Assembly (NCBI GenBank): GCA_047495785.1
Contig: JBLDXI010000023.1
Coordinates: 868,001 to 932,000 of the forward strand
Direction of reading: 5' to 3'
DNA length: 64,000 bases
Origin: Lepidodermella squamata
Taxonomy: Eukaryota > Animalia > Gastrotricha
Numbering within the stretch: the stretch's first letter is position 1; the number at the start of each line of letters is the position of its first letter. Both the position numbers and the translations under genes were made by a program. The notes below the pieces were generated by a model. That model searched no databases, was not told where the DNA came from, and saw nothing but the letters and a program-made list of their open reading frames with translations. This document shows, piece by piece, positions 1,287-26,418 of the stretch.

Positions 1287-2193
1287 TTTCGGTATTTTGT
1301 TGCAATTAAATTAAACAAGCTTTTTGCTGGCGATGGAAAATGCTGGTACAGTTGGTTGGTTAATCCAGATAAATTATGCAGCTTAGATTTTATCGGAACT
1401 CGATGATTTCCCCATGGATGTCAGCACTAATTCGCCTATACAGGTGACAATGCATTGTTGTTCGCACGAGTTTCGTTATTGGTGTGAACGGATTGCGAAG
1501 ATCAATAAGTGTATTTCGCTTTGTTTTCTGGCTGAGCACGCGCTAAATCGATGGAAGAAAATTCTAAAAACGTTTGAAAAAACGTTAACCCTGAATTAGA
1601 TTGGACTGCTTACTGAGTCTTGAGGGCTTTTTTGGGAATCAAAGATTGGATTTATTAGGTATGTGGGGTAGGTCCTTTTATGTCCTTTTAAATGAGTTCA
1701 AAACCAAAAAAGAGGAGTTCACTCTTTCTAGATTAATAAATCTCTCATGAAAATAACCAAACTGCCGAGGGAGTGGAAACCATTAGGATTTTGAGAAACG
1801 TTGAACGGCATTATTTCTCAAGCGCCTCGTGCATTTTCGTGAATACTTTTTAGAGATGCAATTAGAATTCGAGGCTGGCATAAAAATCCATATGAAAAGA
1901 GACAGTCAGGATGCTTCCTAAAAAATAGATTGATAAGGTGCGTTGCCTTAGCAACGCAGCGCCATTTGACACGCTATGGAATTGAGCTTCTCGGATCAAT
2001 GATTTTAACATTTACTTATTCCCGTTCTATCGTCCCGATCTGATAGCTATATAAAAAATTAAAAATTGATAGCTCAATTATTGAACACAGTTTTGCTCAC
2101 ATATCGAACATATAAAAATGGCGAAGATGAGATGAACTTGGTGTGCGATTTAATTTAATAGTTATTCCCATCAAACTTCATCATACTTCAACA

Positions 2194-3330: not shown

Positions 3331-4302
3331 CCTTTTCTTAGTCTTATGCAAGAAGCTATAATTGCATACACTCGTTTTAATTGGATCTACGAGCTCATAT
3401 AAACGTGAGTTTTTGTTGACGGCCGACATTGATGATTGGGTTTATCGATTCGTTCATCTGATATTTGCCAACACGTTCTCTAGTTGCAAGTTAAACATTT
3501 TCTGCTAGAGTCAGATTAAAGCGATATATAACTACAAATTAGCGAAATGTCTTTGATTTTTCGGCTGCAAATTCTTCATCAAATGCTGTTGTTTGTAGCT
3601 GCGGGTAAAACTAAAAACTGCTTCGGAGACGGTTAGCCAGTTGAATTTTCTCCTGGAAATTCTTAAAGTTTCAAGAGGGAGCCTGCACAAATTCCTGAGT
3701 GAAGTCAGGCGGAATAACACAGGTAATAACTTGGAGCAAATCGCTATCTCTCTGGTAAGAGTAGTTAACCCTGCAGACCCTGAAGACCAGATACGCCGAT
3801 CGCAAGTTGAGACGATTTGCTTTAGAGAATTTCAATTTCCTCAATCCTCAAGTTTGATTTTTCAAATTCAAATGATACGCCATGCTAGAACTGTAGCATC
3901 CATGACTCCATGTTACTTATTGTTTTGAAAAGATACCTGGAGACAATTTGTTTGCATTGAATCGAATGTTGTTTCTGTACCCTTCCAGTGGCTAAGCCGG
4001 CAGTGAGCACTCGATACTACGAGCTCAAGCTCAAATCAGGATCAATTTTTTTCCAGGCACTGTATGAATAACGACAGGCGGCAATTTTGATGAAACTAAA
4101 TAAATATTATTCAAATGGAACTGTAGCTCATTTCACGGTCAATCGCGCAACCTCCTTTGCATGAACACACTAACGGTGCAATACCCAGAGTCACCCGCGT
4201 CATCGAGGCTTAATATCCGGTGCCAAAAAGCTTGCCCTACTTCAAACGCTAATGAAACTCTACGTGGCATCGTTTTTTTTCTAGCTCGATTGAGAGTTAA
4301 AC

Positions 4303-5451
4303 ATGCGTCATAGAATCGTTCTGTTACTAATGCTGAGCTTTGGTGATCGCGGGGCAGCAGATAATCTCACGTACTCACCATCTATTAAAGCCGCCGATAT
4401 ATTCAACGCCAACTGCAACGTCGCTGCAACAGCTAATTCGCCGAATGAGTTCGAAGGATTACCTACGTCGATCATACTTGTTCTTCAAATCGACAGATTC
4501 CTGGGTATCGATGACATTGCAGAGTTCCTCTCGTTCAATGGCGTTCTTCAAATCGTATGGCAAGTTCCGTGCGTGTTTGAATACGTGAACAACCCTAAGA
4601 ACCAATGGCCAGCCAAGTTATCAGTGCTGCAGAACGAGCCACCGGATTCCTATTGGATGCCACCCGTTGGCCTCAGAAATGCAGTTGGCCAGATTGAAAT
4701 GGATAAAGCTGATGAATTCTCAGAGCTGCTCACGATCTATCCGTTTGAGGGTCGATTTAACGGGGCTTACGTTGGCAGATTTGCTTACACTTGCGATCTC
4801 GACCTGATCCTTTTTCCTTTCGACACCCAGACATGCACGGCTGTGATCAGCCTGCGAGCGTCGACCCCGTTTGTTCAAGTTGCTGTCGCAAATCTGATGG
4901 TATTGAGTCCTAATATAATGCCGAAAAACTCGAATTGGATGTTAGTTTCGAATCGTACTGAGATACAAGAGTTTGAAATAGTGAATTTCGGAACTGTGAA
5001 CCAGGTCTTATTCACTATGTCTCTGAATAGAAAGGCAGACTACTATTTGCTGAACATGTTCGCGCCAAGTTTCATTCTATCGACGCTGGAAATCGCCGCT
5101 TTTGGAATCCCGGCAACTGAGCCAGACCGAGCCTCATTCGCCTGCTCAGTCATGCTGTCGATTTTCGTACTCCAGGGAATGTTTTCAGCTGCGGTTCCTC
5201 GATCACCCCAGCCAATAATCACTTCGTACTACGTTCTCGGAGTAATCATGTTCGCTATGGTCTGCTCGACCTACGCGGCTATCATGTGTGGCTACTGCGT
5301 AATGTACGAAGATCGAGCGAATAGAATCTTGCATTTCTGTGGCAGGAAGATGCGCGCTTTTGTCGCTATCGATATTGTTGCATTTCTCATTTTCTTTTTG
5401 ACCTACATTTCGCTAAATGTTATTTTAACGAGCTGCCTTGCATTTAACTGA
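4303..5451 (+). CDS. Divergent Cys-loop LGIC subunit, subfamily C (single exon)
   Basis: Signal peptide MRHRIVLLLMLSF; CDLDLILFPFDTQTC; M2 PDRASFACSVML; 4 TM. Confidence 0.93.
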   Translation: MRHRIVLLLMLSFGDRGAADNLTYSPSIKAADIFNANCNVAATANSPNEFEGLPTSIILVLQIDRFLGIDDIAEFLSFNGVLQIVWQVPCVFEYVNNPKNQWPAKLSVLQNEPPDSYWMPPVGLRNAVGQIEMDKADEFSELLTIYPFEGRFNGAYVGRFAYTCDLDLILFPFDTQTCTAVISLRASTPFVQVAVANLMVLSPNIMPKNSNWMLVSNRTEIQEFEIVNFGTVNQVLFTMSLNRKADYYLLNMFAPSFILSTLEIAAFGIPATEPDRASFACSVMLSIFVLQGMFSAAVPRSPQPIITSYYVLGVIMFAMVCSTYAAIMCGYCVMYEDRANRILHFCGRKMRAFVAIDIVAFLIFFLTYISLNVILTSCLAFN

Positions 5452-5877
5452 ATTATGTCATTGAGGCGATGCAGCATGTCATTGAGGCAAGACTTTTTCT
5501 TCCTCTGCTAAGGTCATAGCTTTTTAACTTTCATGCAGAAGTTTATACAATCACTACTGCTTACGACTCGCTCCGAGTTCGAATCGCGCTGATAGCTGAT
5601 AAAGCTTCGATTACGACGCGTAGGTAATTATAAGCAAGGGTGCAAACCTTTCATAAATGCATGACAAAATCACCATTCATTCTAATTTTACATTTAATTT
5701 GAGCTGGAAACGTAAAGAAAATGACAGCGGACTAGCTTTCGGTTTAAATAAAAACGGGGTTCCGAAAACGCTTAAACTATCGAAGAACAAGCCAACTATC
5801 ATTCGAAAACGTAGTCAATTTTTTCCGCTTGAAAGTTAGTGAAGTGCAAGGGCCCTGAGCCCTAAAATCGATAATCG

Positions 5878-5990
5878 ACCTAAACCTAACCCTAACCTTA
5901 ACCCTGAACCCTAACCAAGCACTAAAACTAACTCTAGCCCTATCCCTAACCCTGACTTCTAATCCTAATTCGAAACCCTAATTCCTATTC
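5878..5990. repeat. Degenerate interstitial (CCCTAA)n telomere-like tract
   Basis: cctaaccctaaccttaaccctgaaccctaacc...ccctaaccctga...aaaccctaatt: imperfect 6-mer repeats. Confidence 0.7.
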
Positions 5991-6217
5991 GTCGTCTTCG
6001 TAAAAAAATAAGTATGAAAGCTAATTTTGTCATACAAAAATATGTATGGAAGGTAAAAACTTCATACGTAATAAATATGTAAAAAAGTGCACTTCATATT
6101 TCATTTGTTGTAACGCCATCCTCGAAAAGTGCTTCATACCTTTTACCTGCTTATACCTGCTATCATACGCCCATAATTCTTCAATAAATCAATAAAGTCA
6201 ACATTACTTTTGAATAA

Positions 6218-6346
6218 TCGACGCCACGTACCGTGCGAATTATGGGGATTGGGGCTTTCGACGCCACGTACCGTGCTAATTATGGGGATTGGGGCTTTCG
6301 ACGCCACGTACCGTGCGAATTACGGGGATTGGGGCTTTCGACGCCC
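6218..6346. repeat. 40-bp minisatellite, 3.2 near-identical copies
   Basis: Unit tcgacgccacgtaccgtgcgaattatggggattggggctt repeated head-to-tail with about 1 substitution per copy and no spacers. Confidence 0.95.
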
Positions 6347-6435
6347 CAGCTCGAGAGGTCAAGTCATAAAAACCCGAAAAAACCACGGGGATCAAGATGA
6401 ATCATTATAGTCCAATTGAGCTTTATTAGAACCGT

Positions 6436-7581
6436 TTATCTGAAGTAAAGATATCCAGGAACTCCGAACGAAAACAGTGCATAGAATGAGAAGAATGCAG
6501 AAAACATAACAATATCAATGATAGCGAAATATCGAATTTGATAGCCACAAATAGTCACAATTCTCTCGGCCTGTTTAGGCCACAACATAATGTAACCACA
6601 CATCACAGAGGAATACGTCGCAACTACCATAGCAAATACAATTACTGTGATCAAATAGTATCCCGTAACGAGAGGCTGAGGTGAAATGGGTGAAATTTGG
6701 AGGAAAGTAGATTGAATGATGAAAATTGACAACAACACAGAGCAAGAAAACGCAGTCCGATCAGGTTCGGACGCCGGAATGCCAAAAGAAGCTAACATCA
6801 GAGTTGTGAGGATGAAGCTCGGTGCGTACAGAGTCATCACAAAATACTCAGGCTTTCGCTTTAGAATCAATCGAAAATAAACGAGATTAATCGTGCCGAA
6901 ATTTACGATTTCCAACTTCGAAAAGGAAGTTTGATTGCCAATTATCATCCAAACGGAATTTCTCGGTATATAATCGTCTGGGACAGGGCCGAATGTGACT
7001 GAATCAATAACGATATCTTCGATAGTAGCGCGAGTAACGAAAGAAAATGTGCAGTTTTGCTGGTCGAATGGGAAATTGATGAGGTCCAAATCGCACGAGA
7101 ATTCAAACTTGCCGAAATAACTGCCAGTGAATATACCTTTAAATGGCTCAATCATAAGTTTTTTCGTGAAATCTGGAGAAGAATCCATATTTGAGTATAC
7201 GGCAGCATTTCTCAGCATAATAGGTGGGAACCAGTAGGCATTCGGGGGTTCGTTAATTGCGACATCCAAATTTTCGGGCCAGTCATTTGCTGGGTCATTT
7301 GCGTAGTTTGCAACGCACGGGACGACCCATTGCAGGTCTAGGACCCCTCGGAATGACGTTACTTCAATGCTATCGACGACGCCTATGAATCGGGCAATTT
7401 TGACTAGCATGGACAGTTTTGTTGGCTCGTGGTCATATTGACGGGGTGAATTAACAAAAGGTGATATGTCACAGTTTGACAGCAGAACTGTCGATACAGG
7501 GAAAGTCGCCATGTTAGTTCGATTCATTGCTGTGGACTCAATAACAGCGACAATAGCGAACAGCCAAAAGCTGGATATCAT
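6436..7581 (-). CDS. Divergent Cys-loop LGIC subunit, subfamily C (single exon)
   Basis: Likely start MISSFWLFAIVAV (7581); CDLDLINFPFDQQNC; M2 PDRTAFSCSVLL; 4 TM. Confidence 0.92.
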   Translation of the reverse strand: MISSFWLFAIVAVIESTAMNRTNMATFPVSTVLLSNCDISPFVNSPRQYDHEPTKLSMLVKIARFIGVVDSIEVTSFRGVLDLQWVVPCVANYANDPANDWPENLDVAINEPPNAYWFPPIMLRNAAVYSNMDSSPDFTKKLMIEPFKGIFTGSYFGKFEFSCDLDLINFPFDQQNCTFSFVTRATIEDIVIDSVTFGPVPDDYIPRNSVWMIIGNQTSFSKLEIVNFGTINLVYFRLILKRKPEYFVMTLYAPSFILTTLMLASFGIPASEPDRTAFSCSVLLSIFIIQSTFLQISPISPQPLVTGYYLITVIVFAMVVATYSSVMCGYIMLWPKQAERIVTICGYQIRYFAIIDIVMFSAFFSFYALFSFGVPGYLYFR

Positions 7582-7913
7582 TCTGAGCGTGTGAGAAAAA
7601 ACATGAAGAATACGTTTTATGATTTCAGCTTTCAGTTGCCGCGACAGGCATAGCCGGAAGATGAAAGAAAAACATTTACCAGGAAATTGGAACATTTATT
7701 TATGCATATATAAAATCAATAAATAAAAATTCGGATTGCTAGGAAAAACAGAACGGATGTAACAGTGTCGTTATAGCCCTACTTCAAGTTTCAAAATATG
7801 CCGATAAGCTGAATAGAGAATCGAAGGAGAACATCAAGTCACTCGCCATCCTTTGCCAAATTCAATACTGCGCATATTCCGATTTGCTTACCAGTAGTAC
7901 CATGAATGTTGTC

Positions 7914-9053
7914 TCACAATAGTGACAAAGCGATAGTTGTTATCAGATTGAATGAAATATAGGCCAGGATGAAAATGATGAACGCAACAATATCAATCGC
8001 AACAAACGCTCGCATTTTCCTGCCGCATAATGTCACAATTCTGTTAGCTTGCTCTTCCTTAAATTTACAATAGCCACAAATCACTGCGGAATACATAGCG
8101 CAAGCCATTGCAAACACAATAACAGCCATGACGTAGTAAGAGGTGACGATAGGCCTGGGTGATGGAGGAACAGCGGCTTGGAACATGCCTTGAAGCACGA
8201 AGATAGACAGCATGACTGAGCAGGCGAAAGCAGCTCGGTCGGATTCATGGGCCGGCAGACCAAATGAACTGATTTCCAGAGTTGATAGGACGAAACTTGG
8301 AGCGAACATGTTCAGCAGGTAGAAGGCAGGTTTTCGTTTTAGAACTAAGACAAATTCCGCTGCCTGGAATTCGCCGAAATTCTTCAGAGATTTATTTATG
8401 AATCTAGTCGAGTTGCTTAGAATCTGCCAATTTGAGTTCGCAGGAATGATATCCTCAGTTGCCTTAATGAAATTTAGCCTCGTCAGAACGACGTAGTCCT
8501 GCGTGACCCTGGGTGCAAACTGGGCTACGCAAGTTTGCGTATCAAATGGGAACAACGTAAGGTCCAAATCGCAAGTATACTCGAATCGGCCAAGGAACCC
8601 TCCAATGAAAAGCCCATCGAATGGCAGAACCAGCAAAATCTTCGCAAACTCTTCAGCAAGATCGAGGGTCATTTGACCGACTGCGTTTCTCAGATAGATG
8701 GGCGGGAACCAGTAGGAACCGGGCGGTTCGTTTTGGAGGTACCTCAATTGAGGCGGCCAGCCATTGCTTTGATTGTTCGTGAAGCGAGCTACGCAAGGCA
8801 CTGGCCATATAATCTGGAGAGCTCCATTGAAGGACACGGATTCTGTGACGTCTTCCACGCCCAGGAATCGATCCACTTGAAGGTCGAGTTGAACTGGTGT
8901 CGGGGCGCCTTCGAGTTCAGTTGGCGAATTTGCGTTTGGGGCGATGTTACAGTTGTTGTTGAGAGTCTGCGCTGAAGGGTACGTAGGCCCATCTTGAGCC
9001 CGGCAGAACGATAGGCCGACGGCGAGGAGCAGTAAAACGTGGTTCAACGGCAT
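7914..9053 (-). CDS. Divergent Cys-loop LGIC subunit, subfamily C (single exon)
   Basis: Likely start MPLNHVLLLLAVGLSFC (9053); CDLDLTLFPFDTQTC; close paralog of 4303-5451 (shared CGRKMRAFVAIDIVAF). Confidence 0.92.
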   Translation of the reverse strand: MPLNHVLLLLAVGLSFCRAQDGPTYPSAQTLNNNCNIAPNANSPTELEGAPTPVQLDLQVDRFLGVEDVTESVSFNGALQIIWPVPCVARFTNNQSNGWPPQLRYLQNEPPGSYWFPPIYLRNAVGQMTLDLAEEFAKILLVLPFDGLFIGGFLGRFEYTCDLDLTLFPFDTQTCVAQFAPRVTQDYVVLTRLNFIKATEDIIPANSNWQILSNSTRFINKSLKNFGEFQAAEFVLVLKRKPAFYLLNMFAPSFVLSTLEISSFGLPAHESDRAAFACSVMLSIFVLQGMFQAAVPPSPRPIVTSYYVMAVIVFAMACAMYSAVICGYCKFKEEQANRIVTLCGRKMRAFVAIDIVAFIIFILAYISFNLITTIALSLL

Positions 9054-9802
9054 GTCTCTAATTTCTAGCCGATCAATCCTAGAGAGTCGCAATGTATCAA
9101 CACGAGGCTTCGTCAGGATATTTGGTCCCTGGAAACAAGCGATGCGATAACCAATATTAAACAAATACAGAAATCCAATATTCAAGCGATTGGAAGCGCT
9201 ATTCATCCTCTAAAGAGTCAGTTCAGTTTTGCGGGAAATGCGCACATTTTTCAATTGATACGATATTGTCTGAAAAATTTATTTGAACTAAATATGCCGC
9301 CTTCAGAAAAAATGGGTTACAGAGCAAAACTAAAAAATTTGACCTCTGAAGTTTTGTTTAGGGTTTTCTTGCCTAGACCTCTCGAGCCACAGGATAATGT
9401 CCCCCGTATTCCGCACACTGGAGGATGGAATATACGGTTAGGTGATTACAGATCCCTTCTGAAGAGGGTAACTTCATCGTGTTTTTCTATTTCAGTTTCC
9501 TTTTTCCGCAACCTGCCAACATGCTAGTGAAAAGCCACTATCGGATTCATTCTTTCCTGAATCGTTGATCTTGCTATTTTCCAACTCGTGCTAATAAATG
9601 TTTGATAATGTAGCTGCGACAGAGCCCAATCCGTCATTCCCCGAGGTATTGTTTGAAGTCATTTGCTGGTAAAAAACGACATGCGCTGGGAAAATCAATG
9701 CGAAGCTTTATCAGCAGAGCGTCGATTTCTTGAATAAAATGGGTCAATCAAATAAAAACTGCAACGCCGTCATATTTACCTTTTACTAGCCTAAAGCAAA
9801 GC

Positions 9803-11015
9803 ATGAAATCCTTAATTCTCTACATTTTGTGCTCAGCCGTTGCGTGGTCGAATAATGTATCAAATAAAGTGAGTTGTTTGAAATTTCGAATTGATTTGCG
9901 AATATTGCACACGACGATCTTAGCTCTCTGATGAAAGGATAGCATACCTCGCAAAGTTCGACCGGCAAGGTACGATTCTAGACAACTGCATGGTGAACCC
10001 AACAATGAACTCGCCGAGTGAATTTCTCGGCTATCCGACCCATATTGACGTTTCATTCCTGCTGGATCGATTTTTCGAAATCGATGATGTGGCTCAAAGC
10101 ATAGCCGTGCAAGGATCGTTAAGAGCTGGTTGGGCTGTTCCATGCATCAAAGAATTGTGGCTGAATTCAAGTCTCTGGCCGACTAAAGAGCTGCCGTTTC
10201 TTGGCGATGAAAAAATAGATACATACTGGGTGCCCCATTTAGTCCACCGAAATAGCGCCAGAAATCCTTACATGAGTAACGACGACTACCTTCAGGTTGT
10301 CTTCGTGCTTTTGTATCAAGGGACGTTCGCAGCCGTGACTGTGGGTCGATTTGAATCCTATTGCGACATGACTTTCTACTACTGGCCTTTTGACACTCAA
10401 AGATGCGGGTTGAAATTCCTCCTCCTAATTCGACTTGACTACGCGAAAATTGTCCAGGCTACCCCGTTTCGTCGCCAGGAAATGATGGCGGCTAATTCGA
10501 ATTGGGACGTCCAAAATGTCGAAGGCTCTGTTGCTATGCGCAATTTTTCCGACTTTGGTTGGCCAGTCTTCTCCGAGGCGGTTTTCACGATCACTTTGAA
10601 GCGAAAACATCAGTACTACCTGGTCAATCTATTCGCGCCGAGTTTGATCCTCGACGCGCTACTTCTTATGACGTTTTTCGTTCCGGCCGAAACGCCAGAT
10701 CGACCTGGAATAGCCTCGACTATTATGCTGGCGATTTTCGTCATGCAGACCATTGTCAACTCGTTCCTGCCGCGGACACCTGAACCCATTCTGGCGGCCT
10801 ATCTTGTCATGGGTCAGGTCATTTTCGGTATGGCCATCGCCTGCTATGCCGCTGGGATGTGTTGGTTCTTATCTGTTTTCCCGAAACGAGCTAAAGCCAA
10901 GTTTAAAAAGAAAATTCCGTTATTTCTAATTGCTGATACCATCATGTTTACGGTTGCACTTCTCGCTCTGCTGCTCATTAACGCAGCCGTCGGTTTGATG
11001 ATCATAACTTCGTAG
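9803..11015 (+). CDS. Divergent Cys-loop LGIC subunit, subfamily A (2 exons: 9803-9868, 9924-11015)
   Basis: MKSLILYILCSAVAWSNNVSNK spliced through a 55-bp phase-0 intron (gtgagt...cttag, 9869-9923) to LSDERIAY; CDMTFYYWPFDTQRC; paralog of 64-1286. Confidence 0.9.
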
Positions 11016-11493: not shown

Positions 11494-13995
11494 CTATAAC
11501 TGTTTACTCAAGCCGACAAACTGGTTCTGGAACTCCCGAACAGGCTGGTTGGCTAAAGCGTGGAAGCCAGGCCATCGGCTAGGCAAGTCCTGCATGAGCG
11601 ATCGGAAAATGTTGTCACCGCTTTGAACGACCGACACTAAGTTCTCGATTTTTGAATACTGACTTTGGCAAGTCTCAGCTCCACCCAGCATGTGCTTCAT
11701 CGCCATCTCGTACGAATGGCGAACAAGAGGAATTGGACCGAAATTCACGCGAGAATCATCTGAAAAAATTAAATGAATTAGGAACTTGTGTTTAAAGCCC
11801 AGTATCTATCCCCGCAAAATAAATTGGTCAAAGTAAAAATTACCTTGGCTTAAGCATAGAAGGGCACAAAAGACGGCAAATTCCTGCTGGTTAGAAATAG
11901 TTGCTGCCACTTGGTTGCCAACATAGCTCAGGTAGCTCTTAATCATGAAATCCCTCTCGTTGTCCGTCTGTGAAATTAGCATTGAAAAGCCAGTAAATAA
12001 CCCTGAATCACGAGGAATTAGCCCCAGATTTTCAAAGTTGAACGACATTTGAGCGACAAGAACGGGGAAGAACGAGTTCAGGTACAACACCATGCGTCCC
12101 TGCATGCCGATGGACTTCACGCCGGGTAGAGCATCCAAAAAATCGCTAACTGCCTTCAAGTAAACAGCGAACACGTCGGCTTTGACAATCATAGATTCGT
12201 CAGAAGTCATTTCTGGAGCAATCACAACATTTACCTGTGGAAAAGCATTAATTAAATGGTTGTTGTCTTGCATTCTACACAATTACCTGAGAAATCGGGG
12301 CCAATTTGACGGCAGCCGCAACGCATTGCTGTACAAGCCATTCTGCGAATGAATTTTTGGGCTGCGAAACAGCTGGAGGTATTAGCGACTCAGTGGCTGC
12401 TGTTTGTGGGCTACTCTCTCCCCGTCCTATTAGCATCTGATTGAGAGTCAGGTATGGCCCTTCAGCACCGCTACTCTCTTTCCTTCCCTCGAGCTGTAAC
12501 CCTCCTCCAACTGCTGCAGCGGAAGAAGTCGAAGGCATTTCGATCGAAAACATAGCCGCCACGTGGTAATCGAACGCAGCCGAAGCAGCCCGAATGGCCT
12601 GCGATGTTTGATCAATGTTAGGCGTAACTGTCAGCGATATCTGATCGAAGAATTCATCGTCACTGCTGCTCACTGTTGATTGCAAAAGTAACAAGTCCGA
12701 TGTCAGCTGGGTTTCTTGAGAAGGCTGTTTAGCGAGAGGGCTAGGTTGAGAAGGGCCAGTCGATTCATCTGAAGAATCTCTGATTGATCTTGTGATTGTC
12801 ACTTGGTGACGATCGTGCGGCATGCTTTCTAAGCTGTACGATTCAGATTGAAATGGCGATATCGGCTCAGGATTGGGCATGCTTGTAGTCACCACTGACG
12901 ATTGAGCGGGTAAGGTTGATTCGCTCGAGCAAGATGAGTCCATGATAGAACTTTCAGTCGAGCTCACTTCCCTCGCTTGTTGCAACGACTCGCGCCGACT
13001 TGAAGAAAGCGCGTGCCTAAAACATTGTAAACAATAAAAAATTACGTAATTGAAATTCAACGGGTTACTAGGATGTAATCCTCATGAGTTGAGTTTATGA
13101 TTAAATTAACTCAATGCTCACGGAATTTTTCGTCTCCGGGTTTGTAGCCGCGTGTCGTCTGAGGAGGATTCATCAACATCGTAATCGAGGTCATCGCAAT
13201 CAATGCTGCGATTGTAAACAGGCCCCTTCCACTTGCTAGATGATCCGCCCATTGCCTGCTCGTGCGTATACAACGAATAGCGGCTCCGTGAGAAACACTC
13301 AGGATACATACCAGCATCATAGCAGCGGCGCAGGTAGCAACTACGGCAGTCAGATTTAAGACTGCACGAAGCTTTCGGAATAAATTCGTCCTGTGGTTTG
13401 GAATTTCGAGGGCGTTGTATGCATCCATGTGATGTCCCACGCGTTTGACTAGCGCGGGCGAAAAAGAATCCGCAATTTTCACAAGAGACGACCCCGAAGA
13501 AAAATCCTCGGCCTAAAAGAAATCACAAAAAATCACAGACATCATTTGAATAAAATTGATCATACTCGACGCACTGCAAACTGCACAGGGAATTCTGCTG
13601 AAATCAACGCCCAGTGATTCTTTCGGCACTTCCGAACCACTGCTACCCACCGTTGCTCGTCGCTTTGCTTGCAGTAACCGGCTGCTTTCTGCCCTGTTCA
13701 ATAGCTTAGCTCTTCGCATGTTTGATTTAACACTCGAGCACGTCTTGTATTTGCAGAGTCGGCATTTCGCCAGGTCCGATGCTGATTTATGTTTCGCAGT
13801 TCGGTCTGAGCAGACGCAATCGCTCTCATCTGGCGGGCCTTCTGCTCGGCATTGCAGGTGAAATTCGCGGCAAGATTCGCATATGGATAATCTTGGAAGT
13901 TGAGTTGAATCTCGGCTGCTTCGAGTTAACGGGTGATGCCGAATTTTCGGTATCAGACGTCGACAGACGCCGCAGTACGATTTGCAAGCACTCAT
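11494..13995 (-). CDS. Nuclear receptor with two DNA-binding domains (2DBD-NR), copy A; exons 13995-13566, 13512-13122, 13016-12287, 12234-11844, 11759-11494
   Basis: DBD1 CGVC..CESC..CVC..CRLCKYKTC; spliced DBD2 CAVCSASSRGFFFGVVSCENCGFFFAR...CRSCYLRRCYDAGM; LBD signature FLDALPGVKSIGMQGRMVLY and EFAVFCALLCLS; all four introns GT-AG and frame-preserving. Confidence 0.85.
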
Positions 13996-15045
13996 CGCGC
14001 GGCCATCCAGTATTAATATTCTACAATTCAGAAATTTGAAAAATATTAATCTGAATTCTGCCAAACAAAATGATAAAAATTGAGAAATGAGGAATTTTAA
14101 TATCAATCGCAATCGCGATTTCTGCAGCGTAGTCTGATTATGTTTGAACATTTGAAAACGCGAAAGAGAAATATGCAATTACATACTTGAAGGCCAATAT
14201 CCAGTATGCGGTGAATGTTTCATTGTGTTTCATTGAATAAAAGCGAGTTGCTCGGCTTTTCAAATGGTGCGACAGCAATTAGTCGCCACGCGCGTCTTAT
14301 TCCTGCCTCCAACATCTCGCAGCGGGAAAAATACAAAGGTGAACGCAACTCTATTCTTCCGCTAGCGATATACTAGAGCACCACGGTTGAAAAAGAACAC
14401 AGCAACGCTAGCTTGAATTGACCTTTTTGACCGGCGGCGTAAACAACATGGCTTTAACGAATGCTGATGGTGTCTTAAATATGCCGTGACGCACTAATCT
14501 GCACTTACTGGCGGCGAGCAACAGGTTATCAGCATTTTCACAAGTTGCAGAGATAAATACATGAAGTCAAAATAAAAAGTTTAACTCCACCTGTAGTGTG
14601 CCAAGTACTAAAGAAGCCATGGCAAGAAAGCGCCGAAAAACCTCAAGAGATGAGGGCCCTTTAGTCAGACAAATTCGGGGCTAAAAACACTCAAACGTAG
14701 CCCCAATTCGAGGATCCTACTTTATACACTGTCCTCCTGGGTTGCGATGCCTCTCATTCCCCTTTATACATTATTCTTACGGCTGCTGTTGATCCAGTCA
14801 CACACAAGTATTTGGCACAAGGTATTTTTTCAACAGCATACCAAAAACCATAGTACTCCAGAGGAGCTGCGTATTTAAAAGTCAATTAATTTTCACCCTG
14901 AAATAATTCTCGAAATTTGTCCTCGATAATTTTTGAGCAGAAGAATTTGTGGCTAGAACTGACAAGAGACAAAGCATATCATTCCAGAATCCAGAAATTA
15001 GATTTTATTTAACTAATGAGCGAAACATCACAAGTATGCAAAATT

Positions 15046-15316
15046 GCACATTTTCCTGCCCGGCGATGGTTCCTCCGCGCGCGCTCTTATTGCTATTATC
15101 CTTAAGAAAAAAATACCGACTACGAGCATAAAAAATTTATTCAAAAGAAAAGACATTCTGAATATTGGACTTTCACATTGAGACTTCGCTGCGCGCGCGA
15201 GGAAGGCTGTGATCATTTGTTGCGCATTAAATTCGAGCGAGGTAAACTTACGCGAAAACCTGGTGGCCAATAGAAGCGCGCGGGCCGAGGAAGCACCGGC
15301 GGGGCGAAAAATGTGC
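15046..15316. mobile_element. Degenerate MITE-like element with ~48-bp imperfect inverted repeats
   Basis: gcacattttcctgcccggcgatggttcctccgcgcgcgctcttattg versus caatagaagcgcgcgggccgaggaagcaccggcggggcgaaaaatgtgc (reverse-complement match); no clear TSD. Confidence 0.45.
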
Positions 15317-15395
15317 GTGTAAATTACGACTACCCAATCAGCCTTTTGCTTGATTGCACTGTATCAAGAACGTAGTCGAGAAAATCAAGGATCGA

Positions 15396-17865
15396 TCATC
15401 TGAAGAGATGTAATCGTTGCGAGGACCTACCTCGACGCTCTTGCTGCATCATTTCAACAAACTGCTGCTGGAAATCCCGGACAAGTGAGTCAGCGAGTTC
15501 AAATATTGGCATTTCTAGCATCAGCGTATAGAAAATATCGGCACCACGACGAAAAACCGCCATCAAATTCTGCATTTTCGCCAGTCTATTCAGACTGCTG
15601 ACTGAACCACCTAGCAAATGTTCCATAGCTAGCTCGTAAGAGTGCCGAATAAGTTCGATTTGGTCAGAATTAGCTAGCCTTCCGTTATCTGAAAAAAGTT
15701 GAAGCTATAGATTGAATGAAATATTCAAGTTTGAGCCTACCAGGGCTGAAGCAAACCAGAGCGCAAAAAACAGAAAATTCACGTAGGTTCGAAATCGCTG
15801 CCGCTAGTTGATGACCAACATAGCTCAAGTAGCTTTTAATCATAAAATCTCGCTCATTATCAGCCTGCAGCATCATCATATAAAATCCGTTATATTGCCT
15901 AAAATCGCGCTTCGCTACCGAGCCTGAGGCATTGTTGAAGTTGAGAGACATCTGGGCAATTACAACTCGAAAGAACGCGTGTAGGTATAAGAGTTTGCGA
16001 TCTTGCGGGTTGATCGACTTCACTCCGGGCAAGGCTGTCAAGAATTCGTTAATAGCCCTTAATTGAACGGCAAGAGCATCCGCTTTCACAGCAGCGACGT
16101 TTTCGGTCGTCATCTCTGGGGCAATAGTTAATTCGATCTACAACATAAGCAATTTGGTATTATAATTGGGGAATTGAGTAATAACATGAATAGCCCCTTC
16201 TTAAATCATACACACCTGTGAAATCGGGATCAATTTGACAGAAGCCGCAACGCACTGTTGAATCAACCATTCAGCGAACGAATTTTGTGGCTGTGATACT
16301 GCTGTTGGTGCCAGCGAATCGAGTGACAAGAGGCAGTTGGTTGATGATCCCAGCAGGATTCCATTCAGAGTCAAACAACCTACTCGATCCGAAGTTCCGA
16401 CGCCAATCGCCACGGCTCTACCCTCTGTTAGAGCATGAGTTGAAGCAGTTCGTTTGAACGTAGCATCACCTTTGACTGTTCCTGTATGATATCTCCCGCC
16501 TCCTCTTCTGCCCTTCGACTTGGATATAGACCTCCTCGAAGCGCTTATTAGCTTTTGTTTAGGAGTTTGAAACGGGACGTCTTGGTCGATTTTTGCGGCT
16601 GACGATTCCGACCATGTCACAGATGAGGAAGAATTCAGCCGAGGATGTGACATATTCGTGTCCACATATTGATTTGCTGTAACAGGCTCGTGCGAAGTCT
16701 CGGCATTCATCGCATCGGTTTCACACGCCGTTAGTTCATGCCTTGATCGTCTTGCAACTGTTCTATCGTTTTTAATACAAATGTGCGTTACTTCTTCCGA
16801 AAGAATGGTGAGAATTAGGAAAAATTCGGGAAAAAATCGTCACGTTCCGCGTAACTTCAAAAATACTTACGATAAGGGTCTCCCGTTTAAAGGTAACTGG
16901 CAAGTCGCAGCGCTGCCATCTGAGGCGGCGCCTAATCCAGTGCTATCTGACGGTTCCTCAGTTTCATCATCGTGATCTATATTCATCTCGTTAACATTCG
17001 CCGATCTCAAATCGGCCAACATTTTGATAGTTTCGCGAGAATCTTGTGTATAGCGGCCCATTTGCGAAACGCCCCGACTCATGCCAGCGTTGTAGCAGCG
17101 GCGCAGCCGGCATAACCGGCATTTTGATATCGGGCCGCACGGAGATTTCGGCGTAAATTTGACGTTGAGAGGGCGTTGTAAGCAAACGATATCTGTTCGA
17201 TGTCTATGACTCGATGCACGGATGAAAAATACTTTGCAGCTCGAGCATGTTATTGCGCCGAAGTGACAGCCAGAGCCTAAAAAATAAAAAAATTGTGGAA
17301 AATAATCTGTCGGCTCGGCTATTGCGCATTCGAAATTGTTAATAAATCATTTCGAAGCTTAGGAATTTCGAAGGGCTTAGCGCGAAGACGGGTTAAATAA
17401 AGGTTGAATAAGACAAAAGTTTCAAAACATTGCAACGACTTGCTTACTTGGTGAGCCGCAAACTGCACACGGGATTCTAGCAAAATGAACATCGAGTGAA
17501 TTATTCGAACTTGTCTGCTCGCTGCTACCTGCCCGATTTCCACTAGGTGGCAAGGTTTGATTTGATGCCGATGCCCTCGCTGCCGCGTTGTAGTCGATGA
17601 ATTTCATTCGACGCGCCTTCTGAATGCGTTCCATCACAGTCTTGCATAGCTTGTATCGACATGTTCGACATTTTTTGAGATCTGGCGCGTGGGCACTCGA
17701 GTTCCCACAGGTGCAGTCGCTTTTCATGGACGCTCCTTTCGCTTGGCAACGCCGGTAGAACTTGAGGCAAGCTTCGCACAGCGAATCTGTGGCCTCCTGG
17801 TTGCGTCTATTGATGCCTGGTATCAGCCTTCGACAAACGCTACAATGTAAATCTGAGCCATCCAT
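15396..17865 (-). CDS. Nuclear receptor with two DNA-binding domains (2DBD-NR), copy B; exons 17865-17448, 17276-16871, 16762-16216, 16137-15741, 15688-15396
   Basis: DBD1 CSVC..CEACLKFYRR..CTC..CRTCRYKLC; spliced DBD2 [27 protein letters not shown]...CRLCRLRRCYNAGMSRGVSQMGRY; LBD FLTALPGVKSINPQDRKLLY, EFSVFCALVCFSP; same intron positions and phases as copy A. Confidence 0.87.
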
Positions 17866-19997: not shown

Positions 19998-20597
19998 TTA
20001 ATAATCGGTGTAAATTTCATGAGAGGTGAGGTTGCATTCTTCGGCTTCTTTCTCAGGGTTGTCGAACGATATCAGGCAGTCTTAGAATTAAGAATATTAA
20101 AATGGTCATATGTATTTGATGGAAATTTCGCTTTACTCACCGTAGACGTAGCCGGGGTCGACATCCTCCAGATACATGTGTACAATGGCAACGGTGCAGT
20201 TGACTTCTTGCATTTCTCGCCCTAATCGCCTGAAACCGCGTGAATCCAAGTGAGAGGACATCGCCTGTCGCCAATTGCTGACATACGCTGTCCGCCACGT
20301 CTTAATCCAGATGAAGTAGTACCCCATATCTGGGTCGTCGTCAAACTCGGGGTCCCAGTAGTCCTCGGCATCCTCATCAAGTCGAGAGTCATCCGGGCTG
20401 CAAGATTCATATAGGAATTTCCATCCAGGAAATTTTGGTACGAAGCCAACGCCGCAAATCTCAAATATCTCTTGAAAAATGTGTAGAATACCACACCTGG
20501 AAACGGATTCTCGCAGATCTCGGTACCAGAAGACGTACTCTTCGGGGATTTCGTAATAAACGCGATAACGGTCAGTGTAATACCAACTGGGGTACAT
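19998..20597 (-). CDS. Unknown acidic, Tyr/Trp-rich protein carried inside the Helitron (exons 20597-20141, 20080-19998)
   Basis: ORF MYPSWYYTDRY...DPGYVY; a 60-bp gtgagt...ctaag intron continues in frame to DCLISFDNPEKEAEECNLTSHEIYTDY*. No recognisable domain. Confidence 0.6.
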
Positions 20598-20811
20598 ATT
20601 AGTCGAAATATTATTCTGATCTAAAAAAATAATTTGAATTAAATAAATTAGGGAGAGGAGATAGTTTGTGGACGAAATTCTGACGTCCACAACTGGGGAA
20701 GAATAAAATTTGAGATCATGAAAAGTGAAGAATTCTGGAAAATGAATTATGCTATGCGGATAGAATAGAAAAAATTAGGTAAAGCTGGATGTAAGAAGTG
20801 GCTATAAGCCA

Positions 20812-23800
20812 TCATTTCAGCAACACCTCAGGATAGACAACATTGACGGTGTAGTACTGCTTTGTCTTCTTGTCGTAGTGGCTGAAAACAATAAGGTTTC
20901 GTGGATCTCGAACGCGAGATAAAGCGACGTAAAGCTGGCCGTGAGTAAAAACTGGGTGGTTGGCCAGATGTAAGCCGACAACGTTGAAGGTTTGTCCTGT
21001 AAAATAAAAGAATGAATAAATAATCGGTAAACGAAGGAAATGTAATGGTTCACCTTGACTTTTGTTGATTGTCATAGCGAAAGCAAGTCTTATTGGAAAC
21101 TGTTGCCGCTTCATTGGAACAGGGAAAACGCTCTCATCGGTGTTGAAATCAATTCGTGGAATGAGAACAACCTCGCCTACTCGCGTACCGGTAAGAATTT
21201 CGGCCGTGATAATATCGGACCCTAATTGGGTGATTCGAAGTCGCGTTCCATTACAAAGGCCCCCGGAGCAACTGAGATTTCTGATTAAAATAATGGGGGC
21301 GCCTATTTTCAACGCCAATCGATGAGGTGGTATTCCTGAAGGATTGAGTGTATTGAGAACTTCAACTTGGAACATTGCTCGAGCAGCTTCATCTTGAACG
21401 GTATCGCGACTCGTGTAAATAAGAGCATTTCCGGGCAGCCGTTGCAGGATCTTCTCGTTGAGGTAATCAACTTCGTCATTCCTCGTGGCAAGTATACATC
21501 TCTCGGCGACGTAGCCGGCGTCAGTTCGGTTGGAAAGGTCATCATAGACGGCGCGAATTAGGTCGTTTTCCGAATTCGCGTGCTTAATTGGGTCAGGAAT
21601 GATTACCGAGTCAGGTATGCCAGCAATTCCAGGGGCAACGCCATCCCCAACCTGAGATAAAATCTTTGTTATAAAAAAGACAGACAACTAAAAATGCCTT
21701 ATTACCTGAATTAGCCATTGCACGTAGGGAGCTACGACGGGATCATTAATGACCCGCATATTTCTGGTCAGGCGCATGATTTTAATTGTTGGCCAGAAAT
21801 CAGCTTTTCTCAAGCAAGCGTCAACGATCTCAGCTCGACCACCACGCGGAATGACGGGTAGGCATTGACGAAAGTCGCCACCGAAAACTATGGGAATACC
21901 TGATGAGAAATTGTCAATTAAAACCTGAATTCGGTCGTAACTAAACACAACTAACCTCCAAATGGCAAATTACATTGCGTCAGATCTCGAATGCTCTTAT
22001 CTAGGGCCAAGAAGTTAAAGCGGCTCATCATTGGCGCTTCGTCCCAAATGATCAGATGAGTACGTCGGATAAGGTCAGCGACGGCAGATCTTTTCGAAAT
22101 GGAGCAAGTGCTGTATTCATCCGCTTGCAGTGGAATCTTGAACCGAGAATGAGCCGTTCTTCCACTGTCGAGAAGAATTGCCGCTATACCAGAGGAAGCA
22201 ACAGCCAAAGCGATGTCGCCGAGAGACCGGACTGACCGTAGTAAGTAGTTGTAGATGTAGGTTTTCCCACAGCCGCCATAACCCTCGAGGAAAAACACTG
22301 ATGGCTGACGCTGCCCGGCTCGAAAAGATTCCACTGCGCTTTCGACAACATTTACAACCGACCACTGCTCGTCAGTTAGTCGCAAGCGTTGCTCTTCAAG
22401 TTGAAGCATCAATCTTCCTCGAGGATAACTCAATTCTTCGGTAATGAGAGAAGCAACGGGAGATGTAGGGATAGGCATGTTTGGAAAATCGGCCAAGCTC
22501 AGCCCTTGTGGGCTAATAAAATTAGCAATTTCAATCAATGCATTGTTTTTCATTTCTTGATTAAGTTCCATTTCCGGATTCAGACGTCTCGCTTCGTGTA
22601 AAAAATCCTCGCATAAATGCAAGCAAAATTCTTCCCATAGCAACTCAGGGCTAGGAGGCTTTGCGAAAACCAGAAGAATGGCGAATAGTTGTCGTAACTG
22701 ACGCGGTAGTTGCATGACGGACGCTTCTTTCAAATACTGCTTGATTTCATCACCCGATTCGAGAAGTTTTCGCTTTCGACACGCATCAAAAAACGTAGCG
22801 TAAACTTGGCCATCCACCGTTTTCAGGTATTCGAAGCTTGTAGGACCGGGAACATTGAGCAGCAGTAGACGTAAAGCAAAAAGCTCAGTGTTGTAAGGAG
22901 CTGTGTAAATTCGTCCAATGCCGTAAGCAGCATTCTTGCGGCGATTCCATTTCTTCACACCTTTCTTTCCATCCCAGGTGTAGTGTTCAGGCACCTTCTT
23001 ATATGTCAATTGGCGAGCAAAATCGTCATTTTGGCAAAGCTTGAAAAACGCCGTCAACTTCGTATCCTCAGGATTTTGCAGGTCTTCGATGTTGTCACCT
23101 TCTTTAAAAGTAATTCTCTAACAATAGATAAAAATGTTACATTTGTTAATGACATCATTAATTAATTTTTCTTACCTGCTGGTTCTCGAGATGCAGATCA
23201 AGCCGGCAGACAGATGGATATTCGCCGTGCATATGGTAACCGTAAATATGCCAAAAGGCCTCAGAGGTCGAGATGTACCTGCCTTCTAAAAATCGCTTTA
23301 TTTCGTCACCATCATCAATTTCACCAGCGGCACGGTCGGGTCCCTTGTATACATATTTGTAGTGATATTTGACGCTTCCGACTGTTCCAACAGCTTCGCA
23401 ATTGATATGGCAATTATACTTTTTCAATAGATAGGGATTATAAGGAACGACCCATCTGTTGTCAAGGCGTACAGTTTGTTTATTCACGGTTTTCTCGACA
23501 TATCGACCATTATCGGGACGCTTGTATTGAGGGTAGCCGTCATCAACCCATGCCGTAGACTCTTGAAAGTTCTTGGGGAAGTTTTTCGAGCACCTTCCAT
23601 CCGCCATACACGGGCAACTCGGTTGAACATGCCCACACGGCCCATGTAGCATATGACGCGCGACAATAGCGTGCAATTCAGGATGACTATCTGGATTGGG
23701 AAGTTCAGCGGATATAGCCTTATCGATGTCTTCGGGAGTTCTTAATTTATCCGGGTCGTTCAAAATGAGCAGTAAATGTGAGTGAGGTAGGCCGCGTTTT

Positions 23801-26418
23801 TGAAATTCGATGACATAAACGTAGCAGATAACTTCTCCAAAAATCTGATTTTCAACAATGTCGTGAAGGATTTCCTTAAACTTGAGATTAAAAACTCGAG
23901 CACAAAGGTCGGGGCGATCAGCAGCAGTTTGCAGAAGGTTACCATCGGAGTCACGTAACAAATTGTCCTGAATTTCGGGCCAATTAGGATTGCATGTTGT
24001 AGTAATAAACAAATCCGGTTTCCCAAAGTGGGCAACGCGAGCCATAGCATCATGGTACAACTGGAAATTATGACGCGGCGAGCCAATGTGTGTCGCAGGA
24101 AGGATAATGGAGCGTCCAATATTACCCAACTCTCTTTCTCCTTCTCGATGTGCATCCATTACTCCTTGATAGAGCTCAGCCCTGATCGTTTTCTGATTTT
24201 CTCGCACCCAATGCAATCGATTTGATTCGATTTTAGCCCAAACGTCGCAAGCAAATTGATGAAATAATCGGCCGTACAAAAATAAATTTGAAGAATCGCG
24301 CAATTGGAACAAATAATTGTAATAATCCAGATCCGTCAGTTTCTCATCGCATGTCAATGACTTCTTCATGTTATAAGTCCAACCGGGATTCCCCTCGGGA
24401 AACAACAAAACGTAATGAAGCGGATCGTAAAGAGGAGAATTTTCATTAACACGTTGAAGACCGCCTTCACGTAAACGCAATACAACATCGCGCGGCTGTC
24501 AACGTGAAAAGAATTATTAATGGTTTAAAATAGCATCTTTTGAAATATCAACTCACTTCTTTAATTCCAGGGTCATCAGGAATTAGAGCAGCGACTTCTG
24601 AAGACGTCGGTAAATTGTATCGCCTCTTATCCATTTCATTAGGATCGCAACGTAAAAATAAATTCAAATTCGGAGAGTTTCGAAGAATTTCATGAGCTTG
24701 TTTGTAAATGGCCACGTAAGGATTGAAATTATGAAGTTCCGCTTGGATTTCAGCGACCAAGACAGGATTCAAGTTCTTCAAGTGTCGCAATCGATTAGTA
24801 GCTTCATTATCGCTATCGATAATGTACAGCTGAGCAAACTTGGGAATGTCTCCTGGAACAGGTTCAAGTGCGCCGTGTGAATGGTGTAGGCTTCCACAAA
24901 ACCTGAAGGTTGACCATTCCACACTTCTATCGAGACCGGGTACCCCCAAAGACGTGAAAGCAAAGGCTGAATTGAACGCGCGTACTTCACTGCGAAATGT
25001 CTTGCCAAGAGGCGAATTTTCGAAGAGCAGCTTTTTGAACAGCGGTGTAGGCTGAGGGAACGGTGGAAGTACGATTTTCCCATTAGCACAGCAACGAAAT
25101 GAAGGGTTGCCAATGGTTGACTTGTCAATTTTTTCCTTCATGAAGAATATAGCATTGCAGTGGCGACATTTCGACGATAACTGTCCAATATTGTTTTGGT
25201 TAACTTTCCGCTCGTCATTGAACTCTTTCCGAGCAGCAAGACGTAACCTCTTCACGCCTTTAGGGCGACCAGCGACTGGAGCCGCTTCGTTGACGAAGTT
25301 CTCCAACTCCAAATCATCTACAGAAATGAATAATTGATAAAAACGGAGGGTCTCGAAATGGAGACATTATACCTCCTTCCAAAAGTCCGTCGATGGCCGG
25401 AGCAGAAGGCAGGGGAGTTTCTTGGCGTTCGATTCCGCCAATGCCGGGAATGTCCATTTCATCGTCAGACAATTCTACTGGATCTACATAACATGGTTAA
25501 CGGAATTTAGGATTTTTTATAAACAATGAAATCTCACCATGAACGTATCTGCTAGTGGAAGGGGCGTCAAGCATAGAAGTTGGTCTCTTGACAGCTGAAT
25601 AGGAAAAAGGGTAAAAAAAAAGATATCGTTTCGACCAATCATTACCAGTTATAGTGGGTGAAGCAGACTTAGGGTTTACAGGTGTGAACCTGAACCTTGG
25701 CTGAGGCGAGGGCGAGGACGCCGGTGAGGACAGGCGAAGCGATGCTATTGGAATAATAGGAGTTTGGGGTCGGGGAGAAACTAAAACAAAAAACAAAAAA
25801 TCTTAAACGCTTAGGATTCTAGGATGAAAGCACCTTTACCTGACAATATAGGTCTCGGTTGTCTGAAACATGCTGCAGATTGAGGCCTTACAGTCACAGG
25901 CGTACCAGGATTAAGTGCTCGCAAGTACTGCGGGGGGTTGAACGCTGGAGGAGAAGCCAGTACTGAACAATCGACATACAAAGAATCACTCTGTTGAAAT
26001 GATTAAATTGTGATCCTACTTTCATCATCTACTGCTGTATTGCTCCTCTTCGGCGGAGGGCCTATAACAACGGGACCGCTAACATTACGCTGAACGGCGA
26101 TCAATGATGACGGTCGAATTGGGGGAATAGCGGGAGGGGAAGGCAATTCTAATTTGAGAAATCGAGTGAACACATTTCATGAACTGAATTGATGTGCTTA
26201 CCTTCATCTTCGCGAAAGGGTGTTGCCCTTTTAGGCGGAGGTCTAATCATCACAGAGGTGGGAGGGTTCATGGGCCTGAGCACGACCTTTGGAGATGCAG
26301 TAGATGCTGTAGCTAAATTCAGGCTTGTTAAGTTAGTAGATTATATTGGTGAAACATGTCTACCTCCATCTTCTGCTACTGCTTGCAACAATCGAAAAGG
26401 AACCGGTTTTCGTGACAT
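20812..26418 (-). CDS. Helitron RepHel (HUH Rep endonuclease plus PIF1-family SF1 helicase), multi-exon
   Basis: Zn finger CRHC...CC; Rep motifs PDLFITTTCNPNW, EFQKRGLPHSH, KYHYKYVYKG; helicase motifs GYGGCGKT, IIWDEAPM, GGDFRQCLPV, AMTINKSQG, HGQLYVALSR; joined by ~55-bp introns. The Pro-rich 5' exons (25.3-26.4 kb) and start at 26418 are tentative. Confidence 0.93.

Follow-up and report, generated by a model that had tools for sequence, protein, structure and literature searches.

Two neighbouring nuclear receptor genes of the gastrotrich Lepidodermella squamata as probable members of a large lineage-specific family with two DNA-binding domains

Nuclear receptors (NRs) with two DNA-binding domains (DBDs), the 2DBD-NRs, are a little-studied class for which 1-7 copies per species have been reported (PMC10497141). 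The NR7A group comprises the 2DBD-NR alpha, beta and gamma proteins of Schistosoma mansoni and their orthologues (Wu and LoVerde, 2023; PMC10497141), and further 2DBD-NRs are listed from amphioxus, snail, sea urchin and crinoid species (PMC10497141). Both DBDs of the canonical proteins have fingers of the form C-X2-C-X13-C-X2-C and C-X5-C-X9-C-X2-C, and the pair of P-boxes, or P-P module, is CEACKK-CEGCKG in group A and CLPCKS-CEGCKK or CEACKS-CEGCKG in group B (PMC10497141). No response element has been defined for the class, and the short linker of 17-22 residues is thought to constrain both DBDs (PMC10497141); homodimerisation through the ligand-binding domain (LBD), without RXR pairing, has been described for Sm2DBD-alpha and Eg2DBD-alpha1 only (PMC1810520, PMC10497141). 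Group C, from the nematodes Aphelenchus avenae, Caenorhabditis remanei and C. brenneri, lies outside the NRA and NRB groups and reaches seven copies (PMC10497141), and variable P-boxes are already known from it. Here we describe two genes, A and B, on the minus strand of a 64,000-nucleotide stretch of the L. squamata genome (assembly GCA_047495785.1, contig JBLDXI010000023.1, here C23, positions 868,001 to 932,000; ‘the window’), where they lie between window positions 11494 and 17865, and compare them with these receptors.

Our conclusion, to which we give a probability of roughly 0.75, is that A and B are intact, ancient duplicates within a large lineage-specific radiation of NR7/2DBD-NR receptors, have the layout DBD1-linker-DBD2-hinge-LBD and are likely to be sequence-specific transcription factors. 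A sequence-only reading of the window had proposed proteins of this layout related to the 2DBD-NR class, and the zf-C4 matches, family profiles, predicted folds and exon order described below support it. The two genes share with NR7A the domain order DBD-DBD-hinge-LBD and an LBD most similar to that of NR1D/Rev-erb-like receptors. At the level of their family the first P-box is also of the CEAC type (consensus CEACRK against CEACKK) and the second DBD reads CEGCK(G/I/S)FFRR, and the same genome contains a canonical NR7A-type gene (L043). A and B differ from NR7A in the zinc-finger spacings of both DBDs, in a linker of 50-58 rather than 17-22 residues, in having almost no A/B domain, in copy number (at least 30 here against 1-6 per species), and in their P-boxes, CESCRE/CENCGF in A and CEACLK/CSSCKV in B. 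These P-boxes read exactly as the sequence-only reading had given them, and all four do depart from CEACKK/CEGCKG. In architecture and in the apparent ancestry of DBD1, A and B fit the 2DBD-NR class; in finger spacing, P-P module and linker length, they depart from its description.

Gene A is modelled as five exons (13995-13566, 13512-13122, 13016-12287, 12234-11844 and 11759-11494) with introns of 53, 105, 52 and 84 nt, giving a predicted coding sequence of 2208 nt (735 codons plus stop), and gene B as five exons (17865-17448, 17276-16871, 16762-16216, 16137-15741 and 15688-15396) with introns of 171, 108, 78 and 52 nt and a predicted coding sequence of 2061 nt (686 codons plus stop). Neither model has an internal stop, the ten exons contain no stop codon and no frameshift, and both coding totals are multiples of three. 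Two five-exon paralogs with the same intron positions had been claimed, and this is confirmed: the phases run 1,2,0,1 in A and B alike and all eight introns (52-171 nt) run from GT to AG, with homology between A and B far beyond chance in exon 1 (E 7.7e-17) and exon 4 (E 2.7e-43). The start methionine of A was picked by homology with the N-termini of paralogs, whilst the ATG of B is directly preceded by a stop codon; B also has internal methionines between its DBDs. As a caveat, the exon-3 acceptor of B is followed by two more in-phase AGs that could take its place, 12 nt (16750) and 21 nt (16741) further on. Reading frames were verified by arithmetic at each junction and the domain order was checked exon by exon, and the searches and structure predictions used single exons, the intron-free paralogs L014 and L016, and a relative with a continuous reading frame, P0001.

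DBD1 was placed by alignment and profile at 13702-13980 in A (C-x2-C-x27-C-x2-C ... C-x-C-x16-C-x2-C-x4-C, P-box CESCRE) and by alignment, profile and fold at 17608-17850 in B (C-x2-C-x18-C-x2-C ... C-x-C-x13-C-x2-C-x4-C, P-box CEACLK), both on the minus strand. Compared with the canonical spacing, the first-finger loop is x27 in A and x18 in B instead of x13, and C-x-C replaces C-x5-C. In an alignment of 15 paralog segments, from which DBD2 was left out, eight cysteines are invariant and a CEACRKF(Y/W)xR helix is conserved. When a DBD1-only profile was run against the PDB the top ~42 matches were all NR DBDs, the best being Rev-erb 1a6y (E 8.4e-4), whose alignment spans the P-box through finger two. 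The same profile gave 34 matches at E <= 1e-3 against 1.84 billion cluster representatives, a library that carries no names. Twenty-three of the 34 are two-DBD proteins with published P-P modules (CEACKK-CEGCKG, CLPCKS-CEGCKK, CEACKS-CEGCKG or CEACKK-CEACKG), and 19 of these 23 score best in their first DBD; no ordinary single-DBD receptor was recognised among the 34, nor, judged by P-box type only, any nematode protein. Five proteins matched by the DBD1 profile (P0124, P0127, P0130, P0150 and P0157) carry three to six tandem NR-type modules with highly irregular P-boxes.

Within the family, L014 and L016 each contain both DBDs in one open frame, with two zf-C4 stretches, and DBD1 of paralog L007 reaches 18 bits against zf-C4 over profile positions 2-66. 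AlphaFold2, given the 15-segment alignment, predicts two helices for gene B DBD1 at a predicted local distance difference test (pLDDT) score of 76; every top Foldseek match to this model is an NR DBD (TM 0.52-0.55), and VIA-align gives Z values of 4.4-5.1 over 57-68 residues, which are modest but consistent. Because of these profile matches, the bias towards the first DBD of NR7 and the restriction of fold matches to NR DBDs, we interpret DBD1 as a probable degenerate descendant of the NR7 first DBD, with scores that are convincing only in aggregate. On this interpretation it would have kept the eight zinc-ligand cysteines and the CEAC-type recognition helix, with a longer first-finger loop and a D-box cut to one residue.

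DBD2 is recognised by Pfam in both genes. Its exon-2 part lies at 13286-13519 in A (minus strand, P-box CENCGF, zf-C4 25.0 bits) and at 17059-17283 in B (minus strand, P-box CSSCKV, zf-C4 37.3 bits), against a cut-off of 21.1. Exon 1 closes with the first cysteine pair (IPCAVC), just above 13566 in A and 17448 in B, and the remainder of the domain lies in exon 2, beyond the phase-1 intron. DBD2 had been described as hidden by splicing; it is indeed split across that intron, but exon 2 alone is already above the zf-C4 cut-off in both genes. The phase-1 intron is absent from L014 (346-2019) and L016 (1051-1932), and L014 also lacks the next two introns, so these paralogs show intron loss or gain within the family. 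In both A and B the first-finger loop of DBD2 has 14 residues instead of 13 and the second finger reads C-x14/16-C-x5-C-x2-C-x4-C. The recognition helix of A lacks the P-box lysine and the first arginine of FFRR, and that of B lacks the P-box glutamate. In the wider family the P-box consensus is CEACRK for DBD1 and CEGCK(G/I/S) or CDGCK(I/S) for DBD2. Measured from cysteine to cysteine, the linker between the DBDs is 50 residues long in A and 58 in B, and is basic and serine-rich.

The hinge and the start of the LBD are encoded by exon 3, at 12287-13016 in A (minus strand; conserved ‘FAEWL..QCVAAAVKLAPISQ’) and 16216-16762 in B (minus strand). Serine makes up 20% of this exon in A and 14% in B, where threonine adds 10%, in agreement with the long serine-rich hinge previously described. 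LBD helices of about 3-8 were assigned to exon 4, at 11845-12234 in A (minus strand; family profile against the PDB) and 15742-16137 in B (minus strand; family profile and AlphaFold2 fragment). An exon-4 alignment of 20 members has an LPG-centred signature and an EFAxFCALL helix, and the corresponding family profile (A2) matched only NR LBDs in the PDB, with Rev-erb alpha/beta best (E 1.2e-5, helices 3-8; structures 8d8i, 3n00 and 2v7c). The Pfam family PF00104 (Hormone_recep) was matched individually by 12 of the 20 exon-4 sequences, at a best E of 1.2e-5. The register ‘EF..xLPGxxxIxxxD(R/K)xxL(F/Y)’ agrees with the Ti signature at positions 1, 11, 15 and 19, but not at 2, 3 and 8. For the isolated exon 4 of gene B the AlphaFold2 model is of low confidence (pLDDT 57); its helices follow an order compatible with H3-H8, and Foldseek ranks Rev-erb beta first, which is suggestive only.

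Exon 5 encodes the C-terminal part of the LBD, which ends in A (11494-11759, minus strand) with the conserved motif ‘PVREFQNQF’, resembling an activation function 2 (AF-2) helix, and in B (15396-15688, minus strand) with ‘LVRDFQQQF’ and a basic tail of 20 residues. Across the family this end carries a conserved hydrophobic-x-(E/D)-F motif (‘LVxEF’) at the position expected for AF-2, and it may be read as such. In P0001, a metagenomic relative, the whole LBD lies in one frame and matches PF00104 with 24.5 bits, above the cut-off, over positions 21-189; its residues 404-477 align with exon 5 of gene B, so that the link between exon 5 and PF00104 is transitive only. Taken by sequence, A and B appear to have a real but very divergent LBD with Rev-erb as its best match. 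Among solved structures, Rev-erb (NR1D) gives the best match to the DBD1 profile and to the LBD profile, but it has one DBD and lacks helix 12, whereas the family described here keeps its C-terminal hydrophobic-x-(E/D)-F motif.

The extent of the family was assessed in the 121-Mb assembly. Searches with exons 1 and 4 of gene B find six close genes, namely A, B, a third gene on C23 (~816 kb) and one each on contigs C54, C10 and C42, together with upwards of 60 distant LBD exons, the majority of them arrayed on C54. A word search with exon 2 of gene B, whose length filter excluded full-length relatives, gave no match. The DBD1 profile gave 33 full-length matches, 29 of which have a Pfam zf-C4 match downstream on the same strand (median 343 nt), and gene A is the thirtieth such case; the two-DBD family of this genome thus numbers at least 30 genes. 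A and B are two of this set and no isolated oddity. Genome-wide, at least 150 zf-C4 matches were obtained from 438 candidates. The canonical two-DBD gene lies on contig C17 (L043:1501-3408, equal to G000:C17:2780500-2782407) as a single frame of 636 amino acids with P-boxes CEACKK and CEGCKG, two strong zf-C4 stretches and 22 residues between the DBDs. The junction between its DBDs, ‘DLRFVPCAVCGASS’, resembles that of gene A, ‘VDFSRIPCAVCSAS’, and the family motif ‘DFS(K/R)IPCxxC(G/S)xSS’. Its closest relative is the metagenome protein P0012 (57% identity), and among named sequences it is closest to those of amphioxus, snails, sea urchins and crinoids. Outside this genome, the only close relatives of the family, and of the canonical gene too, were found in contigs of one environmental metagenome, ENA ERZ23486764 (including L041 and L042), to which a related small animal presumably contributed DNA.

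Further members of this family are arranged in tandem on C54 (~2.51-2.67 Mb and 2.01-2.04 Mb), C24 (~3.2-3.7 Mb) and C19 (~1.74-1.76 Mb). On C54, 41 zf-C4 matches are listed between 2.52 and 2.67 Mb at a spacing of roughly 2 kb, and copies at the distal end (2.634-2.672 Mb) match the DBD1 profile in its second half only; DBD1 may have been lost or truncated in these copies. Pairs of zf-C4 matches with identical scores occur across contigs C25/C26, C31/C48, C15/C105, C28/C33 and C26/C49, which points to haplotypes left uncollapsed or to segmental duplication of very recent date, and the number of genes in arrays on the paired contigs may be inflated; C54 and C23 are unaffected.

Two nematode systems offer further comparisons. 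With the nematode 2DBD-NR group C, the family shares a highly variable P-P module, multiple copies per genome and strong divergence from the groups of Spiralia and deuterostomes; it differs in that the genome here keeps a canonical CEACKK/CEGCKG gene. A search of this genome for the SL1 leader gave no match, a further difference from nematodes, so that splice acceptors of nematode type (TTTTCAG) and short introns do not mark the genome as that of a typical nematode. The HNF4-derived supplementary nuclear receptors (supnrs) of nematodes are likewise a lineage-specific, tandemly arrayed and very divergent radiation, in which P-boxes are altered and LBDs come only just up to Pfam thresholds, and the zf-C4 count given above is of similar scale; supnrs have one DBD, however, whilst the radiating lineage here has two. 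We found no paper in the literature that describes an expansion of two-DBD receptors.

In phylogenetic trees the six close genes are united with 100/100 support on a long stem; within this clade B stands apart, whilst A clusters with the C10, C23b and C42 copies. Synonymous sites are saturated between A and B (proportion of synonymous differences, pS, 0.69-0.78; 0.78 in the LBD exon), so no direct ratio of nonsynonymous to synonymous substitution (dN/dS) can be given for the pair in the LBD exon. The LBD exon of gene A is 78% identical to that of the C10 copy, with a dS of 0.67 and a dN/dS of 0.18, and where it is measurable dN/dS is 0.09-0.27 in the LBD exon and 0.12-0.40 in DBD1, with the highest values in DBD1 of gene A. 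A and B are old duplicates under purifying selection and are not sisters. Since their synonymous sites are saturated and A is closer to the C10 copy, a recent tandem duplication is ruled out, and the fast-diverging duplication of the sequence-only reading is set aside on the same grounds and on dN/dS values of 0.09-0.40. These data bear also on whether A and B are unexpressed or decaying copies whose models appear intact merely because open frames were chosen to fit. The degraded P-boxes would agree with decay, but this account is scarcely credible given ten clean exons, eight canonical pairs of splice sites, coding sequences divisible by three, invariant DBD1 cysteines, and a dN of 0.12-0.5 at saturated synonymous sites; as far as sequence can tell, A and B appear to be intact genes.

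A tree of DBD cores (52 columns) addresses the origin of the two-DBD layout. All first DBDs, of the family and of NR7 alike, fall together to one side of a branch with 99/98 support; the second DBDs of the family fall with NR7 second DBDs and single-DBD receptors, gene A DBD2 pairing with the C10 copy (support 100/95), and the stem branch of the family DBD1 is very long (2.2). Inheritance from NR7 is the best-supported origin, with other origins tenable, because an approximately unbiased (AU) test does not reject a tree in which DBD1 and DBD2 of the family are joined (delta lnL 3.6, p 0.33). Such a tree would be expected if the layout had arisen independently, through internal duplication of one DBD, and had converged on NR7, and the small number of usable columns and the long DBD1 stem leave room for that history. 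We nevertheless consider it distinctly improbable, since the best tree groups every family DBD1 with the first DBDs of NR7, the DBD1 profile finds NR7, mostly in its first DBD, and not the far commoner single-DBD receptors, the consensus P-box CEACRK is one residue off the CEACKK of NR7A, and the junction motif ahead of DBD2 is common to the canonical NR7 gene of the same genome.

The AU result is one of several points that weigh against our placement of A and B. As a single sequence, DBD1 gives no zf-C4 match in Pfam for gene A and 7.7 bits for gene B, against the cut-off of 21.1; its structural matches are modest (Foldseek E 0.3-1, Z about 5); and the C-x-C start of its second finger is odd for zinc coordination and is modelled at low confidence. 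PF00104 was not matched in Pfam by any single exon of A or B, and the exon-5 profile found no NR LBD in the PDB. In DBD2, the P-box losses might mean weaker DNA binding rather than retargeting. It had been expected that hmmscan would return two zf-C4 hits and Hormone_recep, and with the exons of A and B taken singly this holds for DBD2 zf-C4 but not for DBD1 or PF00104. Whether DBD1 scores or folds as a C4 zinc finger had been proposed as a check, and it does so through the family profile and, at modest confidence, through an NR-DBD fold, but not by single-sequence Pfam.

Several of the same observations would also be explained if DBD1 were a relic zinc module that no longer binds DNA and serves some other role (protein contacts, dimer geometry or nuclear targeting), with A and B acting as single-DBD receptors through DBD2 alone. 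Its sub-threshold Pfam scores, finger spacings far off canonical (x18-x27 against x13, C-x-C against C-x5-C) and low pLDDT in the second-finger loop point that way, as do the P-box CESCRE of gene A and the dN/dS of its DBD1, the highest found (0.24-0.40). This is the main alternative, possible though doubtful in our judgement, because the eight cysteines and the ‘CEACRKF(Y/W)xR’ recognition helix are kept across at least 15 paralogs, dN/dS is well under 1, and the two-helix model can be superposed on NR DBDs in their DNA-bound form.

The pair is embedded in an array of very divergent Cys-loop ligand-gated ion channel (LGIC) genes, mostly single-frame and on both strands, at 64-11015 and 18434-63996 of the window, which continues upstream on the contig for at least another 60 kb (L044). 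A Helitron-type element lies inside this array at 20133-25312 on the minus strand (Helitron_like_N 203 bits, PIF1 158 bits, Pif1_2B 72 bits). At least 17 open frames of the window, flanking the pair on both sides, match Neur_chan_LBD (33-53 bits), and the LGIC array around the pair, noted earlier as a putative chemoreceptor array, is real. With a hidden Markov model built from these frames, LGIC genes were also found to adjoin the third C23 paralog, about 65 kb away, but none was detected beside the C54, C10 and C42 paralogs, where 10 kb to one side was searched. Proximity to LGIC genes is thus confined to C23, and an LGIC association as a trait of the family is ruled out within that scope. 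A and B might still be devoted to the surrounding array, as regulators or as intracellular chemical sensors, as the channel genes on both sides and beside the third C23 paralog could suggest; this is very unlikely in our view, given the C54, C10 and C42 members, the location of most of the family in NR-only tandem arrays on C54, and the expectation that two expanded families will meet by chance in a genome rich in tandem arrays.

On the reading that we favour, each protein would consist, in order, of a DBD1 descended from the NR7 first DBD, a basic, serine-rich linker, a zf-C4 DBD2, a serine-rich hinge, a Rev-erb-like LBD and an AF-2-like helix. They would most likely act as sequence-specific transcription factors, probably homodimeric by analogy with flatworm 2DBD-NRs. 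What the sequences show is gene structure, domain homology, family size and purifying selection; DNA binding by either module, dimerisation, AF-2 function and any ligand are inferred. Because key P-box residues are replaced, half-site preference may have shifted away from AGGTCA-type sites, and the linker of 50-58 residues could allow both modules to reach sites at wider or more variable distances. A bolder version of this reading, rather unlikely as a whole, would make the family the largest known two-DBD radiation (at least 30 genes, perhaps 60 or more by LBD matches), supnr-like on an NR7 scaffold, whose remodelled first module and long flexible linker give either a new combinatorial reading of bipartite DNA sites or a role other than DNA binding, forming a diversified repertoire of intracellular sensors whose C23 copies are tied to the LGIC array.

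Taken alone, A and B are ordinary family members, and the interest rests with the family, whose size of at least 30 genes is far above the copy number reported for any animal. One canonical NR7 gene and at least 30 remodelled derivatives amount to a natural mutagenesis series, in which some P-boxes are near-canonical (CEACRK/CEGCKG) and others strongly altered (CESCRE/CENCGF) and linkers and finger loops vary too, and which could reveal whether and how two tandem NR DBDs jointly read DNA. The family would also represent a second, independent NR expansion of nematode scale, useful for asking why such radiations occur.

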